Position numbers and translations under genes: made by a program. This document shows positions 4,929 through 60,073 of a stretch of 64,000 bases of DNA, piece by piece. The notes under the pieces were generated by a model, which ran no database searches, was not told the DNA's origin, and saw only the letters and a list, made by a program, of their open reading frames with translations. How positions within the stretch are numbered: position 1 is the stretch's first letter; every line of letters begins with the position of its first letter. The stretch lies in the sequence record NC_048016.1. One strand, given 5' to 3'.

Positions 4929-4954
4929 AAAGAGCCTGCGGGCTCTTTTTTTTT
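4929..4954 (+). terminator. Intrinsic terminator
   Basis: AGAGCC-TGCG-GGCTCT plus a T run. Confidence 0.85.
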
Positions 4955-4960
4955 CTTTTT

Positions 4961-4988
4961 TTACTTCATGCATGATTTCTTATAGAAG
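4961..4988 (+). promoter_or_regulatory. Putative middle promoter motif TTAC-N16-TATAG
   Basis: Same arrangement at 5409, 11299 and 43541-43565 (minus strand). Confidence 0.5.
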
Positions 4989-11264: not shown

Positions 11265-11299
11265 CCTACCGCTTCGGCGGTAGGTTCTTCTTTTTTTTT
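11265..11299 (+). terminator. Intrinsic terminator
   Basis: CCTACCGC-TTCG-GCGGTAGG plus a T run. Confidence 0.9.
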
Positions 11300-18021: not shown

Positions 18022-18050
18022 GGTGCTGTGTAGTTAAACTGTAAGAAAAA

Positions 18051-18090
18051 AAAAGCAGGGGTTAACGCCCCTGCTTTTCCCTCTTTTTTT
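18051..18090 (+). terminator. Terminator after chimallin
   Basis: AAAAGCAGGGG-TTAACG-CCCCTGCTTTT plus a T run. Confidence 0.85.
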
Positions 18091-28906: not shown

Positions 28907-28945
28907 AAAAAAAAATAAAGGGGTCGCAGTGGCCCCTTCTTTTTT
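28907..28945. terminator. Bidirectional terminator
   Basis: A run, AAGGGG/CCCCTT, T run, between convergent genes. Confidence 0.75.
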
Positions 28946-33698: not shown

Positions 33699-35396
33699 AT
33701 GCGCTATACGATTCACATTACCCACACGAGCATGGGTATACGTGTGGAGGTGCCTGTCCGCCAGATGGAAGTGGCGATACTGGACTGGGCACAGGCGAAT
33801 CTGCACGCCCCGAAGATGGGCAAAGACCATGGAAGGATAGTGACGGAGAAAGGGGATGGCTTTTATGTCCACATGCCAACCATCCACACCTTTATCTTTC
33901 ACAAAACATTCTTGAATCGCATTCAGTCCATCCTCAATCACGTGGGTGTAGAGTATAAGGTTGACTACGAAATCCGGGAACATCATTACCCCCGCGCAGA
34001 ACCGTATCGGTGTGAATTCGCCAACTACGGTTTTGAGATGGTGGTAACGGATGAGACCTCACGTTTCTTTTACCAGAACGAAGTGGTGGAGACAGCCTGT
34101 TCAGACGGGCAGGAACAAACCATCTTCGCGATACAGACCGGAAGGGGCAAGACCAAAACCTTCCAGAAAGTCATGGTGAGAAAAGGTGTCAGGACAGCGT
34201 TGATACACCGAGCCTCTTACGTTGATAAGTGGAAGTTTGACTGTAGCGAAGACCCCACCGGTCTGCAAGAGCCCGCAGAAGGCGTGCACGTTTGTAAAGG
34301 AGTTGAAGGGATATACGAAGCCTACCAGATGGGCCTCAACGGGGAACTGGATGCGAAGGGGATAAAGATAATCATCTTCTCAACCACCTCACTCATGATG
34401 TTCTTGAAAGAGTACATCAATACCGCCCACTCCAACGCCGTGTGCTTAGAGAAGTTCTACGACGTGATGGGTGTCGGGCTGGTTGGGTGTGATGAGGTGC
34501 ACGAACATTTCTATCTGGTGTATCTGGCCGGGATCATGCTGAACCCGCCGGCAACCGTCGAGATGTCCGCAACCTTAACCCCGGGTGCCAGCAAGCAGTT
34601 TATTGGTGAACGCTACTTAGAGCGCTTCCCGATGAATTGTCGTGTGTCGGTGCCGTTTATCCCGGTTGTTGATGTGCGTGCTTTGTACTACAGCATCGAG
34701 AACAAGAAGCTTGTGACATACGGATCGAAGATGACCCCGTATAACCACAAGATGCTTGAGAAGGCGTTTGTTAAGTATAATGCACACGAGTCGTTCGCCG
34801 AGATGGTGTGGGACTTGATGGTTAAAACCTACCTCAAGAACTATGAGGTGGGTCAGAAGGCACTGGTGTTCTTTGCCACTGTTGACATGTGTGCGTTCTT
34901 TACTGAATTCTTGCAACGTAAGCTCGCGGCAACCGAGTGGGACTACTTGCAGGTGTTCAAGTATAATGCGGGGGATTCGTATGATGACTTCATCGCAGCC
35001 GATATCGGAGTGTCGACGCCGGGTAAAGCCGGTACCGCTATCGATATCCCGGGATTAATGCACGCGTACGTGACTATCCCAATTGATGACCAGCAGCTCA
35101 ACGAGCAGATTGCCGGTCGTCCACGCGCAACAACACGCTGGCCGATTGACCCGCGTGTCTGGTTCCTGCACTGCAATGATATCCCTAAACACGGGACGTA
35201 CCTGAGCTCACGCAAGAAGTCGTTGGGTGAGAAAGTCAAGTCGTTCCAAATCGCATTTTCGCCCTACGTTATCAGGAGCAGCAATGCTAGTACCTCCTAC
35301 TCCTTCGCTTCCCAAACCCCCGTACGCCGGATTGAACTTAGCAAGTTTTCTCCAAAACGTTCTAAGGGCGTATCCCGGCGCAGAAGACGTCGCTAA
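33699..35396 (+). CDS. SF2 (DEAH-type) helicase
   Basis: Walker A QTGRGKT, DEVH, SAT, STPGKAGTAIDIP and QIAGRPR. Confidence 0.92.
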   Translation: MRYTIHITHTSMGIRVEVPVRQMEVAILDWAQANLHAPKMGKDHGRIVTEKGDGFYVHMPTIHTFIFHKTFLNRIQSILNHVGVEYKVDYEIREHHYPRAEPYRCEFANYGFEMVVTDETSRFFYQNEVVETACSDGQEQTIFAIQTGRGKTKTFQKVMVRKGVRTALIHRASYVDKWKFDCSEDPTGLQEPAEGVHVCKGVEGIYEAYQMGLNGELDAKGIKIIIFSTTSLMMFLKEYINTAHSNAVCLEKFYDVMGVGLVGCDEVHEHFYLVYLAGIMLNPPATVEMSATLTPGASKQFIGERYLERFPMNCRVSVPFIPVVDVRALYYSIENKKLVTYGSKMTPYNHKMLEKAFVKYNAHESFAEMVWDLMVKTYLKNYEVGQKALVFFATVDMCAFFTEFLQRKLAATEWDYLQVFKYNAGDSYDDFIAADIGVSTPGKAGTAIDIPGLMHAYVTIPIDDQQLNEQIAGRPRATTRWPIDPRVWFLHCNDIPKHGTYLSSRKKSLGEKVKSFQIAFSPYVIRSSNASTSYSFASQTPVRRIELSKFSPKRSKGVSRRRRRR

Positions 35397-35664
35397 AGCA
35401 TTATGCACCGATCCGGTGATTGGCCCGGCGTTTCATTACTACATGGTGATGGAACACAAAGCCGGGCTGATGATTCAGCAACGGGGCAAGACGTACTACG
35501 TAACGCGCCAGTCCTCCATTCGGGGGACGGCGTCTTACGAGCTGTATAGCTTTGTGATGTACCGTAACGATCCATCAGGTAATGTGGATCAGAACCCAAA
35601 GGTGGCCTATCGTTTGTACGACAACGAATGGAACACGTGGGTAACGGTACCGCACGATATTTAA
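35284..35664 (+). CDS. Hypothetical protein overlapping the helicase 3' end
   Basis: AGGAG RBS before ATG 35284; alternative start at 35443. Confidence 0.55.
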   Translation: MLVPPTPSLPKPPYAGLNLASFLQNVLRAYPGAEDVAKALCTDPVIGPAFHYYMVMEHKAGLMIQQRGKTYYVTRQSSIRGTASYELYSFVMYRNDPSGNVDQNPKVAYRLYDNEWNTWVTVPHDI

Positions 35665-35723: not shown

Positions 35724-36326
35724 ATGTCACAGCGCAAAAAGAAACCCGCTTATAATCCACGTAAACTTGCACGTGAGCGTTTAGAGAAGCTGATGGCGAG
35801 CATCTTCTACGTTCAGGATATGTTCACCGCCGAGTCGGGTAAAATCGCAAAACGTTTGGATATGGACTTAGCCGAAATCACCGGCACCACCGAACTGGAT
35901 GCGTATAAGCGTGAACAGACTGAGCGTTCGAAAGCCGCCTACATCGGCCTTATCAGTCAGGTCAGTAAAGACCTGTCAGCCGTCATCGTCGCTGCCGACA
36001 ATGCTGCGGGTCAGGTTGTTGCTGACTTGAAAGTGCGTCCGTGGAAAGAGATGAAGGATGCGGCGTTTATCGCTGAATTGGCATTGGAGCACCACTCCAC
36101 GGAAGCTGCAATCGCCGGTCAGAAATACACCGGTCTGATTCTGGAAATCATGCAGGACTACTTCCGCAACATCGAATTCGTCTGCCGTGAAGTCAAAGCG
36201 GGCCGTTCGGTTGAAGATGCGAAGAAGACCCTGACTGAAAATATCGCGAAAGAAGCAGAAGTTGCTGCGGCAGCCGCTGCTGAAGTTGCGTCTGCTGAAA
36301 AGGAAACTGTCGATGTCGCAGAATGA
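35724..36326 (+). CDS. Conserved hypothetical protein (200 aa)
   Basis: TAAGGA RBS; TATG late-type motif upstream. Confidence 0.85.
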   Translation: MSQRKKKPAYNPRKLARERLEKLMASIFYVQDMFTAESGKIAKRLDMDLAEITGTTELDAYKREQTERSKAAYIGLISQVSKDLSAVIVAADNAAGQVVADLKVRPWKEMKDAAFIAELALEHHSTEAAIAGQKYTGLILEIMQDYFRNIEFVCREVKAGRSVEDAKKTLTENIAKEAEVAAAAAAEVASAEKETVDVAE

Positions 36327-38331
36327 AGGGCGTCCGGGCTCCGGTCGCGTTGCGCCGTCAGAGAGCAATGATACTGCTCAACTGATGGCCATCATGGAAG
36401 CTAACCCGTCTCTGGGCATTGCTCAGGCCCGGGTGTTGCTTGACGAACAACGTGGGCTCGCTAAGCTGGAAGAGCAAGAGAACGCTCAGCCAGTAGTCGC
36501 CCCTCCTCAACCTACTGTGCGTGAAGATATCGCTCCGGCAAACATCACACACCAACACGTTCACGTGGAGCCGCCTGAACCACTGCAAGCTGCTCCGCTG
36601 GACGTGAAGCCGCAGGAACAAGCGGTGCAGCCGCTTCATCCCCCTATTCGCTCTACAGCGTTTATGGATGCGGCGGTGGCCGCCGCTGCGCCTGCTGCCC
36701 CTTCTTTTTTGCCTCCGGAAGAGCCACAGCCTGCCCCTGAGCCGTTGACTGCCCAACCGGTAGCCCAACCTGCTCAGACCGCAGAGCCACTCTTGCCAGA
36801 GCAGGAAGAAGAACGTGTGCCGGATTATCAAAAAGCGGGTAAGCCGACCATCCGTCTGGGCAAGTCACTGGCCACCAGTGAAATCAACGCTATCGATTCT
36901 GAAGACCAAGAACTCCTGCTACTCGGCATGGGTGATCTGGTGGGGCCGATGCAATCCCTGCCGGAAATGCAAAAGCACGTGAATCAGTTCTTCTCAAGTT
37001 TGGAACGTGACCCGCGCACCAATGCGCCACTGTTCCGTTCTGAGGAAGAAGAAAGCACGTTCTCACGCCTGCAAGCGGCACTGGCAAATACCCCGCCGAC
37101 TGCCCCGGGTACGCGTAGCGCCAGCTTCGACATGGCAATGGGTCGTGAAGACACGGTGTGGAACCAAGGCATTCAGCCTGACGGTCAACCGTACCGTGGT
37201 GTGGTCAGTGTGAACACCGGCGGTAAAGGTGCTATCGCTGCACTGCGCCGTAAACGTAAGTCAGGTTCGCCGTCTACGGTCTTCCTGCCTGCGTCCGGTT
37301 TCTGCATTAGCTTCCGTGCCCCACACGAACGTGACTTCTGTGACTTCGATATTCGCATGGCGCTGGAAACCGCGAAAGTGGGCATGAGTTCCTACGGGTT
37401 GCTGATGTCTGCCTCGTCCGGTATCTACGTGCGTAACATCGTTGAGTTCTGTCTGCTGTTTGTTGAAGGCTGTTCACTGGAACTCGGCGGGGATGACCTG
37501 AAGACCACCCTTATCGATCGTATCGATAAAGATGACTACTGGTTCATTATCGTCGGCATGTTGGCGGCGAAATTCCCATCGGGTATTCCGTGGGGCTTAA
37601 GCTGCCTGAACCCGGCGTGTGACCACGTGCAGGAAGGGCGTCTGAATCTGGCCCGTGCGATTCGCATGGGAACCAGCTTACTGGCTGATGAGCAGCGCCA
37701 GCTGTATTACCGTCAGCGCAGTGAAGATGCCTCTGAAAACACCATCACGTACGAAGAGCAAACGCAGTACCGCCAGCAGCACAAGTCGGTGGCCGCGTCT
37801 ATCTTTGAGAAAGACGGTGTGACGATTGAGTTCGGTCGTTCTTCGCTGGGTGACTTCTTTGATGTTACCGAAGAGTGGGCGGATGAAATCAACGAAACCA
37901 CTACGCGGGCGTTGACTGACTATGCCACCGAAAAAGACCGTGAGACCCATCTGCGTGTGAACGCGGAGTCTCGTCGTCTGACGCGTTACCTGCACATGGT
38001 GAAATCCATTTCGATTGATGAAGGCGAAGGTCGGGTGTCGAAAGCCACCAACCGGGCTGAAATCAAAACCATGCTGGCAGAGATGTCGTCTGACCGTCTG
38101 TACGTGACCGAGTTCGAAGCGGCGGTAACGAAGTTCACCGAGATGTCTCGCTTGGCGGTGTTTGGCTACATGGGCAAGAAGTGTCCACAGTGCCAGCATT
38201 CGCAGGGTGAGGCCGACGGTGACTTCCGCGGTATCGTGACCATCTCACCGGACAGGGTTTTTTTCGCGCTATCTCGTGCGGTGTCCGCAATGCAGAGGCT
38301 TTGGCTCAGTCAATACGCCGATATTGGCTAG
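36313..38331 (+). CDS. Putative tail/baseplate assembly chaperone (T4 gp26-like C-terminal domain; phiKZ gp77 position)
   Basis: Pro/Gln-rich N-terminus, then ISFRAP...D...I...LSCLNPAC...LNL and CPQC patterns. Confidence 0.6.
   Translation: MSQNEGRPGSGRVAPSESNDTAQLMAIMEANPSLGIAQARVLLDEQRGLAKLEEQENAQPVVAPPQPTVREDIAPANITHQHVHVEPPEPLQAAPLDVKPQEQAVQPLHPPIRSTAFMDAAVAAAAPAAPSFLPPEEPQPAPEPLTAQPVAQPAQTAEPLLPEQEEERVPDYQKAGKPTIRLGKSLATSEINAIDSEDQELLLLGMGDLVGPMQSLPEMQKHVNQFFSSLERDPRTNAPLFRSEEEESTFSRLQAALANTPPTAPGTRSASFDMAMGREDTVWNQGIQPDGQPYRGVVSVNTGGKGAIAALRRKRKSGSPSTVFLPASGFCISFRAPHERDFCDFDIRMALETAKVGMSSYGLLMSASSGIYVRNIVEFCLLFVEGCSLELGGDDLKTTLIDRIDKDDYWFIIVGMLAAKFPSGIPWGLSCLNPACDHVQEGRLNLARAIRMGTSLLADEQRQLYYRQRSEDASENTITYEEQTQYRQQHKSVAASIFEKDGVTIEFGRSSLGDFFDVTEEWADEINETTTRALTDYATEKDRETHLRVNAESRRLTRYLHMVKSISIDEGEGRVSKATNRAEIKTMLAEMSSDRLYVTEFEAAVTKFTEMSRLAVFGYMGKKCPQCQHSQGEADGDFRGIVTISPDRVFFALSRAVSAMQRLWLSQYADIG
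38259..38265 (+). other. Candidate -1 programmed frameshift site T TTT TTC
   Basis: In-frame slippery heptamer. The -1 frame is open into ORF 38301-38744, which lacks a good start. Confidence 0.6.
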
Positions 38332-38744
38332 ACAGCGAGCACGTTTCAACCGAGACCATCATCACGACCTTAAAGCTTGATGCCACGTCACTCTTTAAAA
38401 GTCGTAAAGGCAAACCCATCACGTATCAGGAAGCACACGACACGTTGTTGGGGGCGTTCGACGATGCCATTGAACATGACACCGGGCCAAACTCGGTGTT
38501 CTTCTCTGACTTCGACGACCCGCTGACCGGTTCTCTGTTGGACATCTGGTTGGACACGTACATCCGTGAGCGAATCGGTGAACGGTTCAACCTGTCGTTT
38601 GATGAATTCCTTGACCGTCCCCGTTATGAAATCATGCGCATGATAAGTGTCGTTGGGCGTTATAACGCGGTGGTCAATCGGGAAATCAACAAAGCAGGGA
38701 AAGATGTTGACTCGTTGGAACAACAGTTGCACGGGAAAACGTAG
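38301..38744 (+). CDS. Probable frameshift-extension domain (gpT-like) of the chaperone
   Basis: TTG start with an RBS only 2 nt away; no early Met; FNLSFDEFLDRPRYEI resembles gpT/GpE' motifs. Confidence 0.6.
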   Translation: MAQSIRRYWLDSEHVSTETIITTLKLDATSLFKSRKGKPITYQEAHDTLLGAFDDAIEHDTGPNSVFFSDFDDPLTGSLLDIWLDTYIRERIGERFNLSFDEFLDRPRYEIMRMISVVGRYNAVVNREINKAGKDVDSLEQQLHGKT

Positions 38745-38750
38745 CATCGT

Positions 38751-38777
38751 GGGGGCTTCGGCCCCCTTTCTTTTTTT
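38751..38777 (+). terminator. Intrinsic terminator
   Basis: GGGGGC-TTCG-GCCCCC plus a T run. Confidence 0.85.
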
Positions 38778-38816: not shown

Positions 38817-39662
38817 ATGAATATCTACGACGATGTCGCTGACCAGCTCATCGCCCATCGGCATGAGACCCGCGCCGCGGCAATGTTAGACCTGACCACT
38901 ATCTTGATTGACAACGGCTATGAGCCGGCGTTGACTGAGATTTACCATCAGCCGATTCCTGACCCTAACGAAGAAACCGTTCGTTACGAAGAGATTATCA
39001 TTCGCTGTGCTAAAAACTTTGGGTCGAAATGCGGCATCGCGTTTAACCCACAGGTAGCATGGCACAAACCCAAAGAGACGGGGTTGATTCTCCATGGTCT
39101 CTTGGAAGGCTTTGAGGCCAACGAAGATGTGGACACCCTGTACGGTATCGTGCTCTCGGGTGAGCCGCCTATCTTTGTACTGGAAAACCTGATTCGCTAC
39201 GTCTTCGGTGATGACAACCTGCATGTTGAGGATTTAATCATCAACGTCGAGAACCGGGTGATGACGGTACTTCAAAACTTCCTCTCTGCGGCGACCATTG
39301 AGAAGAACAATCTCAACACCAACGATCGCATGGCACACATCGCAGCCTACCTGCGCTACTACCCGCAGAACCCCAGTGCATGGGTCTTTATGAACCTGCC
39401 ACCGGAAGTCGAGGAGAAAGTCCTTATTCAGCAGCTTGACTTCGGGGAAGACAACGGGGTAAGTGCCCTGGAATTACTGGCCATCTACAGCGTGGGCTTG
39501 TGTGTTGCCCAGTGTGATGATTTTGACAGCGCTTACACGCAGCTGGAGAAGTCTTTTGAAGCATTGAATACAGATGGGTACCCTGCGACCCCAACGCTTC
39601 AGGAAGGCTTACAGGCGCTTAAAACCATATACGGGGTAACAGTGGAACATGAACAAGCTTGA
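38817..39662 (+). CDS. Conserved protein (phiKZ gp79 position, probably virion)
   Basis: 281 aa; TATG motif and AAGGA RBS upstream. Confidence 0.8.
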   Translation: MNIYDDVADQLIAHRHETRAAAMLDLTTILIDNGYEPALTEIYHQPIPDPNEETVRYEEIIIRCAKNFGSKCGIAFNPQVAWHKPKETGLILHGLLEGFEANEDVDTLYGIVLSGEPPIFVLENLIRYVFGDDNLHVEDLIINVENRVMTVLQNFLSAATIEKNNLNTNDRMAHIAAYLRYYPQNPSAWVFMNLPPEVEEKVLIQQLDFGEDNGVSALELLAIYSVGLCVAQCDDFDSAYTQLEKSFEALNTDGYPATPTLQEGLQALKTIYGVTVEHEQA

Positions 39663-60000: not shown

Positions 60001-60030
60001 GAGAGGGCCTTCGGGCTCTCTGTTTTTTTT
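60001..60030 (+). terminator. Intrinsic terminator
   Basis: GAGAGGGCC-TTCG-GGCTCTC plus a T run. Confidence 0.8.
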
Positions 60031-60073
60031 TGCGTTACCAGCCAGTTTTATGAGCTAATGAGGAGACACCCCA

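Follow-up and report, generated by a model that had tools for sequence, protein, structure and literature searches.

The DNA analyzed here, called the window below, comprises the first 64 kb (bases 1-64000) of the genome of Erwinia phage Wellington (MH426724.1), and its coordinates are identical to those of the genome. The subject is a pair of genes on the plus strand, gp51 and gp52, which almost certainly form one recoded gene. The first open reading frame (ORF1) is gp51 and encodes 672 amino acids (aa) counted from an ATG; an in-frame TTG is also present 17 codons upstream. The second ORF lies in the -1 frame and is annotated as gp52 (38301-38744) from a TTG that is not conserved (Table 1). 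A first-pass annotation had proposed that a programmed -1 frameshift joins the two ORFs and that they represent a tail chaperone pair of the gpG/gpGT type. The positions it had given for ORF1 and for the slippery heptamer agree with the window sequence, and its product lengths of 672 aa and about 810 aa are arithmetically correct. The -1 frame is open across the heptamer up to position 38744, as had been described, but it starts at 38223 and thus further upstream than the position 38262 that had been given.

The putative site of the shift consists of seven T followed by a C. In the register of ORF1 it reads T TTT TTC (38259-38265), which is a canonical heptamer of the type X XXY YYZ, and it lies 22 codons before the TAG stop codon. 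Runs of at least seven T were found 13 times in the window when both strands were considered. The run in gp51 is the only one that is situated deep inside a coding region, the other 12 are intergenic or lie in leaders. Over the whole window such runs are twice as common as in shuffled sequences (23 overlapping matches versus 10.7 expected). The other runs (e.g., 4946-4962, 11291-11299, 18046-18054, 28907-28915, and 60023-60031) often occur as facing pairs, and the T-runs outside gp51 are probably terminators or promoter elements.

The gp51 gene is a direct homologue of gp77 of phage phiKZ (tblastn to PHIKZ077, 2e-17), and the synteny with gp78-, gp79-, and gp80-like genes is kept. Homologues are contained in 226 phage records. 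The T-run and the frame relation were compared at 29 annotated phage loci (Wellington and 28 others) and on 11 contigs from IMG/VR, two of which duplicate annotated phages. The survey spans about 16 lineages at the genus level, whose hosts range from Pseudomonas to Bacillus, i.e., Wellingtonvirus, Seoulvirus (SPN3US), Erskinevirus, Machinavirus, Derbicusvirus, Phikzvirus, Serwervirus (201phi2-1), Agricanvirus, Chiangmaivirus (RSL2), PCH45, Maaswegvirus, Xanthomonas phage LucasX, Halocynthia phage JM-2012, two Vibrio phages, and Bacillus phage AgentSmith along with its relatives from metagenomes. At every surveyed locus, about 40 in total, the second ORF lies in the -1 frame relative to the gp77 homologue, and the -1 frame is open across a T-run that is located 8 to 50 codons before the ORF1 stop. 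The run is found at the same aligned spot and has a length of seven or eight T at most loci, of nine at one, of six at three, and of five at one. A canonical in-register heptamer is contained in the run at 33 of the about 36 distinct loci. It is T TTT TTC in Wellington and in all SPN3US-like phages, and T TTT TTT or T TTT TTA in phiKZ-like and other phages. Thus, the conservation of a T-run and of the frame relation in orthologous pairs, by which the proposal of a frameshift was to be checked, was found at all loci.

Several observations indicate that the run itself is conserved. Of the phenylalanine codons elsewhere in the ORF1 homologues, 36% are TTT (0 of 18 in RSL2 and 2 of 14 in PCH45), while at the site the first phenylalanine codon is TTT and the preceding codon ends with T in all 16 lineages. 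In Bacillus phage AgentSmith, the T-run is retained although the zero frame reads Phe-Leu there. Judged from these alignments, selection at the site acts on the nucleotides, because the run has been kept while the ORF1 proteins of Wellington and of the distant lineages are only 18-22% identical. Among 17 distinct sequences of the SPN3US-like clade, the lowest nucleotide entropy (0.17-0.19 bits) was observed from the run to position +30. In this clade, the codon periodicity tracks ORF1 upstream and changes to the -1 frame directly behind the stop of ORF1. The position of the zero-frame stop is also kept, and the overlapping leucine or isoleucine codon of the -1 frame always retains the bases that form the TAG. 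This constant retention suggests that the end of the short product matters, too.

The downstream ORF does not have a conserved start of its own. In 15 SPN3US-like phages, the 62 codons of the -1 frame that directly follow the run show a protein identity of 54-74%, and no ATG, GTG, or TTG is conserved within these codons. ChrisDB has no start-type codon at all in 66 codons, and SNUABM_11 and EarlPhillipIV have none before codon 63. The annotated TTG of gp52 is preceded by GAGG two bases upstream, and there is no early ATG in that frame, both as described in the first-pass annotation. The TTG is unique to Wellington, however, and it is missing from the nearest relatives. In the Seoulviruses, an ATG occurs 39 codons 3' of the run. 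Because no start codon is conserved, the annotated starts in the relatives are scattered over about 200 nucleotides (nt) and comprise ATG, GTG, TTG, and CTG. Orthologues that lack the slippery site and possess an independent ATG with a ribosome-binding site would have refuted the proposal, and this check came out in favor of the frameshift: the T-run is kept and no start is conserved.

Ten distant phages, phiKZ among them, have -1 frame domains with homology to that of Wellington. In phiKZ (NC_004629.1, reverse complement of 69418-75590), the gap of 218 nt between PHIKZ077 and PHIKZ076.4 is coding in the -1 frame. The whole -1 frame of phiKZ has 167 codons and matches phrog_12109 from residue 29, whereas the annotated gp76.4 represents its last 80 aa only. 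The gene pair is mis-annotated in every annotated record examined, with inconsistent starts, and it is partly missed in phiKZ. A genuine in-frame fusion was found neither among 44 ORF1 clusters nor among 33 representatives of the ORF2 family. Two candidates for such a fusion were considered and rejected. SEGD1_042 of phage SEGD1 (KU726251.1) is the sole record with a single ORF (795 aa). Its T-run is the same as in its relatives, and it has one extra base elsewhere in the gene in comparison to the near-identical sequences of SPN3US and Proteus phage 7; the single ORF represents either an error in the sequencing or a long form that is natural and constitutive. The other candidate, P0054, stems from a short, error-prone contig of 1.6 kb, and its entry into the -1 frame lies about 30 codons too far upstream.

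Taken together, these results strongly support a programmed -1 shift that would join the long gene to a downstream ORF without a start. The explanation that is preferred with moderate confidence is that gp51 and gp52 are one gene that is recoded by programmed -1 ribosomal frameshifting at the U-run and yields isoforms of 672 aa and about 810 aa. Most ribosomes would reach the stop codon of ORF1 and produce the 672-aa protein, while a fraction would slip back by one base at the U-run. Two tRNA-Phe are able to re-pair on a U-run after a slip of one base, and here the tRNA-Phe in the P-site as well as that in the A-site would both pair again with UUU. The slipped ribosomes would then read about 160 codons in the -1 frame, i.e., the stretch 3' of the T-run that is proposed as the C-terminal extension of the long isoform, and the resulting protein of about 810 aa would carry an additional helical domain at its C-terminus. 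The phiKZ gp77 family, which is a core gene of the nucleus-forming jumbo phages, has this arrangement from its common ancestor.

The deposited records, with the exception of the single ORF of SEGD1, annotate the pair as two separate genes. The small ORF would then have a translation start of its own, either at the TTG (38301 in Wellington) or through re-initiation behind the stop of ORF1, and the T-run would represent nothing but conserved Phe-Phe codons. The GAGG in front of the Wellington TTG and the ATG of the Seoulviruses fit this view. It is nevertheless improbable, because no start-type codon is conserved, several phages lack any such codon over more than 60 conserved codons, and the Wellington TTG is absent even from the closest relatives. 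In addition, two independent genes would leave the constant -1 relation and the TTT bias at the site unexplained, and the Bacillus phage has the T-run without a Phe-Phe in the zero frame. Even less probable, to a degree that it can practically be disregarded, is an artefact or decay, i.e., an error in homopolymer length in the assembly or a gene that was broken by one frameshift. Homopolymer runs are error-prone in some sequencing chemistries and SEGD1 is annotated as one ORF, but the identical frame relation was found in about 40 independently sequenced genomes and contigs. SEGD1 has the usual T-run and its extra base lies elsewhere, so that it is the exception and not the rule, and the only other apparent fusion, P0054 from the short contig, begins to read the -1 frame too early. 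The comparative data thus rule out that the layout in Wellington is due to a sequencing artefact or a pseudogene.

A more serious competitor, though clearly the less likely one, is transcriptional slippage. The multisubunit RNA polymerase of the phage, or that of the host, would stutter on the A-run of the template and add one U to some of the transcripts, and translation of these would yield the long isoform. The conserved element is always a T homopolymer, mostly of seven or eight residues, and never another slippery heptamer, irrespective of the host, and the search for a conserved stimulatory RNA structure yielded none, which also fits this mechanism. Chimalliviridae transcribe with their own polymerases, and therefore a polymerase-based signal could be host-independent; a gene for an RNA polymerase subunit lies 1 kb downstream. 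At four loci the run has only five or six T, which is short for efficient slippage by bacterial polymerases and thus argues against this mechanism. The canonical in-register heptamers also favor the ribosome, but they discriminate weakly between the two mechanisms, because most registers of a run of seven or eight T are canonical anyway. To our knowledge, programmed slippage would here be seen for the first time with a phage polymerase of this type. Compared with this, ribosomal frameshifting is probably the mechanism of the shift, and a number of points weigh against it. That nothing but a homopolymeric U-run is used in lineages so far apart would be equally in line with transcriptional slippage. 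In phage pVa-21 the run comprises only five T and does not include a canonical heptamer, and in two metagenomic relatives of 201phi2-1 the run of six is in a non-canonical register. A downstream structure with support as a stimulator was not found: the alifold consensus has -1 kcal/mol, covariation is absent, and the z-scores are near 0. A Shine-Dalgarno-like element is absent at the usual distance of 10-14 nt upstream of the site. No proteomic or ribosome-profiling report of the trans-frame product was found in the literature searched, and the function that is ascribed to the protein draws on weak fold matches of predicted models.

The possible RNA structures around the site differ between the lineages. 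The hairpin of five base pairs (bp), which had been named in the first-pass annotation 11 nt 3' of the heptamer, is present in Wellington, but its proposed role as a stimulator was not substantiated. It has a single-sequence z-score of +0.16 and shows no covariation, and only the three sequences of Wellingtonvirus form it completely; its presence is probably incidental, or it stimulates the shift weakly at most. Of 12 distinct sequences of the clade, 9 have another intact stem of 5 bp, with a spacer of 6 nt, while Wellingtonvirus has the 5-bp stem with the spacer of 11 nt. The folding energies at the site are not better than those of shuffled sequences, and no structure common to the distant lineages was found. 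Weak or absent stimulators are compatible with a shift of low efficiency.

The features of the locus are summarized in Table 1. The first 250 residues of gp51 differ greatly in length between the lineages and are probably disordered. The conserved domain of ORF1 contains four cysteines in two CxxC-type pairs that are about 190 residues apart. Because these two distant pairs are nearly invariant across all lineages, a zinc site is suggested that would bridge distant parts of the domain fold. The hairpin 3' of the second ORF has six G-C pairs, a TTCG loop, and a T-tract, and the next gene starts at 38817. No terminator was found between ORF1 and the -1 frame ORF, while a strong one follows directly after the second ORF, and therefore both ORFs are on one transcript end.

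Table 1. Features of the gp51/gp52 locus of Erwinia phage Wellington (window coordinates).
Feature	Coordinates	Strand	Basis or remark
ORF1 = Wellington gp51, 672 aa, zero-frame (short) product	36313..38331	+	ORF and family matches
Variable N-terminal region of ORF1, rich in Pro/Ala/Gln/Glu, unalignable between lineages	36313..37062	+	
Conserved ORF1 domain, 422 aa, with the Phe-Phe site close to the end	37063..38331	+	alignment, AlphaFold2 model
-1 frame ORF, stop to stop	38223..38744	+	annotated as gp52 from TTG 38301
Zone open in both frames, holds the T-run/slippery heptamer and the most conserved nucleotides of the locus	38223..38331	+	
5-bp hairpin, Wellingtonvirus only, without statistical support	38277..38289	+	
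Conserved core of the -1 frame domain, match to phrog_7580 cross-hitting phrog_12109, all-helical with long C-terminal helix, contains the SFDEFLDRPRYEI motif	38376..38738	+	
Hairpin resembling an intrinsic terminator, with T-tract, just 3' of the -1 frame stop	38751..38776	+	

The upstream neighbours of gp51 are a helicase gene, the small ORF gp49, and a phiKZ gp78-like gene. Downstream follow a phiKZ gp79-like gene and, after about 1 kb, a gene for a beta-like subunit of the virion RNA polymerase. This set of neighbours (helicase, two small hypothetical genes, gp79-like gene, and virion RNA polymerase beta-like subunit) is the same in all lineages. The locus thus lies between the helicase gene and the gene for the virion RNA polymerase subunit, and it had been noticed correctly that no tape measure gene is adjacent. 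The small ORF gp49 (35332-35664) and the end of the helicase gene share 65 nt. Its reality is uncertain, because the relatives have ORFs of other sizes or nothing annotated at this place. The helicase gene gp48 (33699-35396) has a length of 1698 nt in Wellington versus 2724 nt in the 99.8% identical phage Kwan (KX397369.1, 33700-36423). The additional in-frame segment of about 1 kb in the Kwan helicase could be an intein or an inserted domain.

With respect to the family, gp51 matches phrog_8054 over its full length (1e-272) and the more distant phrog_4585 (2e-67), and gp52 matches phrog_7580 and phrog_12109. No function is assigned to any of the four families. In the supplement of the core-genome paper, phiKZ gp77 is listed as the Chimalliviridae core gene cg18 and as a hypothetical protein, and this listing carries no mention of recoding (Prichard et al. 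2023). Searches of Pfam, NCBIfam, and PDB sequences with both ORFs and with the family profiles yielded nothing significant. A match to a tail assembly chaperone was obtained for neither ORF in Pfam, NCBIfam, PHROGs, PDB sequences, or PDB folds. The FNLSFDEFLDRPRYEI motif that had been pointed out in the downstream ORF is present, and it is the most conserved part of the downstream domain and includes an invariant proline, but the resemblance to gpT that had been seen in it is not supported by any tool.

Structure predictions were made with AlphaFold2 for the conserved domain of ORF1, with a predicted local distance difference test (pLDDT) of 81.5 and a predicted template modeling score (pTM) of 0.83, and for the -1 frame part, which has a pLDDT of 84 and is all-helical with a long C-terminal helix. 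A Foldseek comparison of both models with the PDB did not reveal any match below an E value of 0.29. In BFVD, the ORF1 domain matched its own family strongly. Weaker matches were found to about ten models of proteins of about 250 aa that are named T4-like baseplate hub assembly protein, chaperone, or hub subunit (E values from 5e-5 to 3e-3, probability of about 1.0, template modeling (TM) scores of 0.3-0.55 when normalized by the target). The term "chaperone-like", which had been used for gp51, is not backed by any family of tail assembly chaperones, but it gains weak and unexpected support from these fold matches to T4-like hub assembly proteins. In phage T4, gp26 and gp51 are listed as baseplate hub assembly chaperones (PMC3004832). 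The likeness of ORF1 to them concerns the predicted fold and was drawn via the names of the BFVD models. ORF1 is two to three times longer, and the TM scores reach only 0.3-0.55. None of 15 diverse members of the ORF1 family had a Pfam profile match at E <= 1, the hub assembly family included, and we know of no frameshift in T4 gene 26 or gene 51.

Some records label the family "putative baseplate hub assembly protein". In the records of phiKZ and 201phi2-1, the ORF1 homologues do not have a note such as "structural" or "mass spectrometry", while neighbours have one. Furthermore, the Goslar homologue gp081 is not mentioned in the main text of the Goslar virion-structure preprint. Because of the hub assembly fold matches, the record labels, the missing virion flags, and the silence on the Goslar homologue, it is a reasonable, albeit unproven, hypothesis that the protein is a non-virion assembly factor with a minority long isoform. 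The isoforms might act in the manner of other assembly chaperones of phages that come in a short and a long form, with a shared body and an extra docking domain on the minority form. More speculatively, the recoding might be an ancient, host-independent switch that sets the isoform ratio of a missing tail or baseplate hub assembly chaperone, i.e., a counterpart of G/GT on a fold like that of T4 gp26/gp51, or it might reflect stuttering by the multisubunit RNA polymerase of the phage; either version is rather unlikely at present.

The Chimalliviridae, with the phage nucleus, their own RNA polymerases, and their role as therapy candidates, are among the most intensively studied phages, and most of their 68 core genes are without an assigned function. 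If cg18 (phiKZ gp77) is recoded, one core gene would encode two proteins, and the larger one would never have been considered in proteomic, localization, genetic, and structural work. The weak link to the fold of the T4 hub chaperones would be the first testable idea of the function of cg18. Because the U-run has been kept from Pseudomonas phages to a Bacillus phage, the locus offers a clean natural case for the distinction between a ribosomal and a polymerase-made shift, and nucleus-forming phages, in which transcription and translation are physically separated, represent a test bed for the mechanism. The author of the first-pass annotation did not know of a description of such a frameshift for the Chimalliviridae. 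A published frameshift in phiKZ gp77, in SPN3US gp39/40, or in the Chimalliviridae was not found in the literature searched, which includes a review from 2025 on phages that form a nucleus as well as the core-genome paper; the coverage was partial, and an earlier mention is possible.

The organization of the locus resembles that of gpG/gpGT of phage lambda and of E/E+E' of phage P2. All have a -1 slippery heptamer near the 3' end of the upstream ORF and a downstream ORF without a start, and two isoforms with a shared N-terminal body, which are predicted from the sequence in the present case; the layout has been kept despite divergence. In contrast to gpG/gpGT, the upstream ORF has 530-720 aa instead of about 100-150 aa, the locus does not lie between the genes for the tail tube and the tape measure, and the slippery sequence is invariably a U-run. 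The label "gpG/gpGT-type" is thus not supported, because the size (672 aa in Wellington), the neighbourhood, and the family all differ. Another well-known example is dnaX, for which tau and gamma are produced by a -1 frameshift in Escherichia coli, whereas transcriptional slippage on an A-run is used in Thermus (reviewed in PMC5009743). In E. coli dnaX, a strong hairpin follows the site and a Shine-Dalgarno-like element precedes it, neither of which is supported here, and the shifted product is shorter in the case of dnaX and longer in the case of gp51/gp52. The likeness is that one gene would give rise to two forms of a large protein at a homopolymer-like run, by a ribosomal or a transcriptional route that depends on the lineage in the case of dnaX. 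In a gene family for which a prior description was not found, the locus is therefore a new and deeply conserved case of a known kind of recoding.

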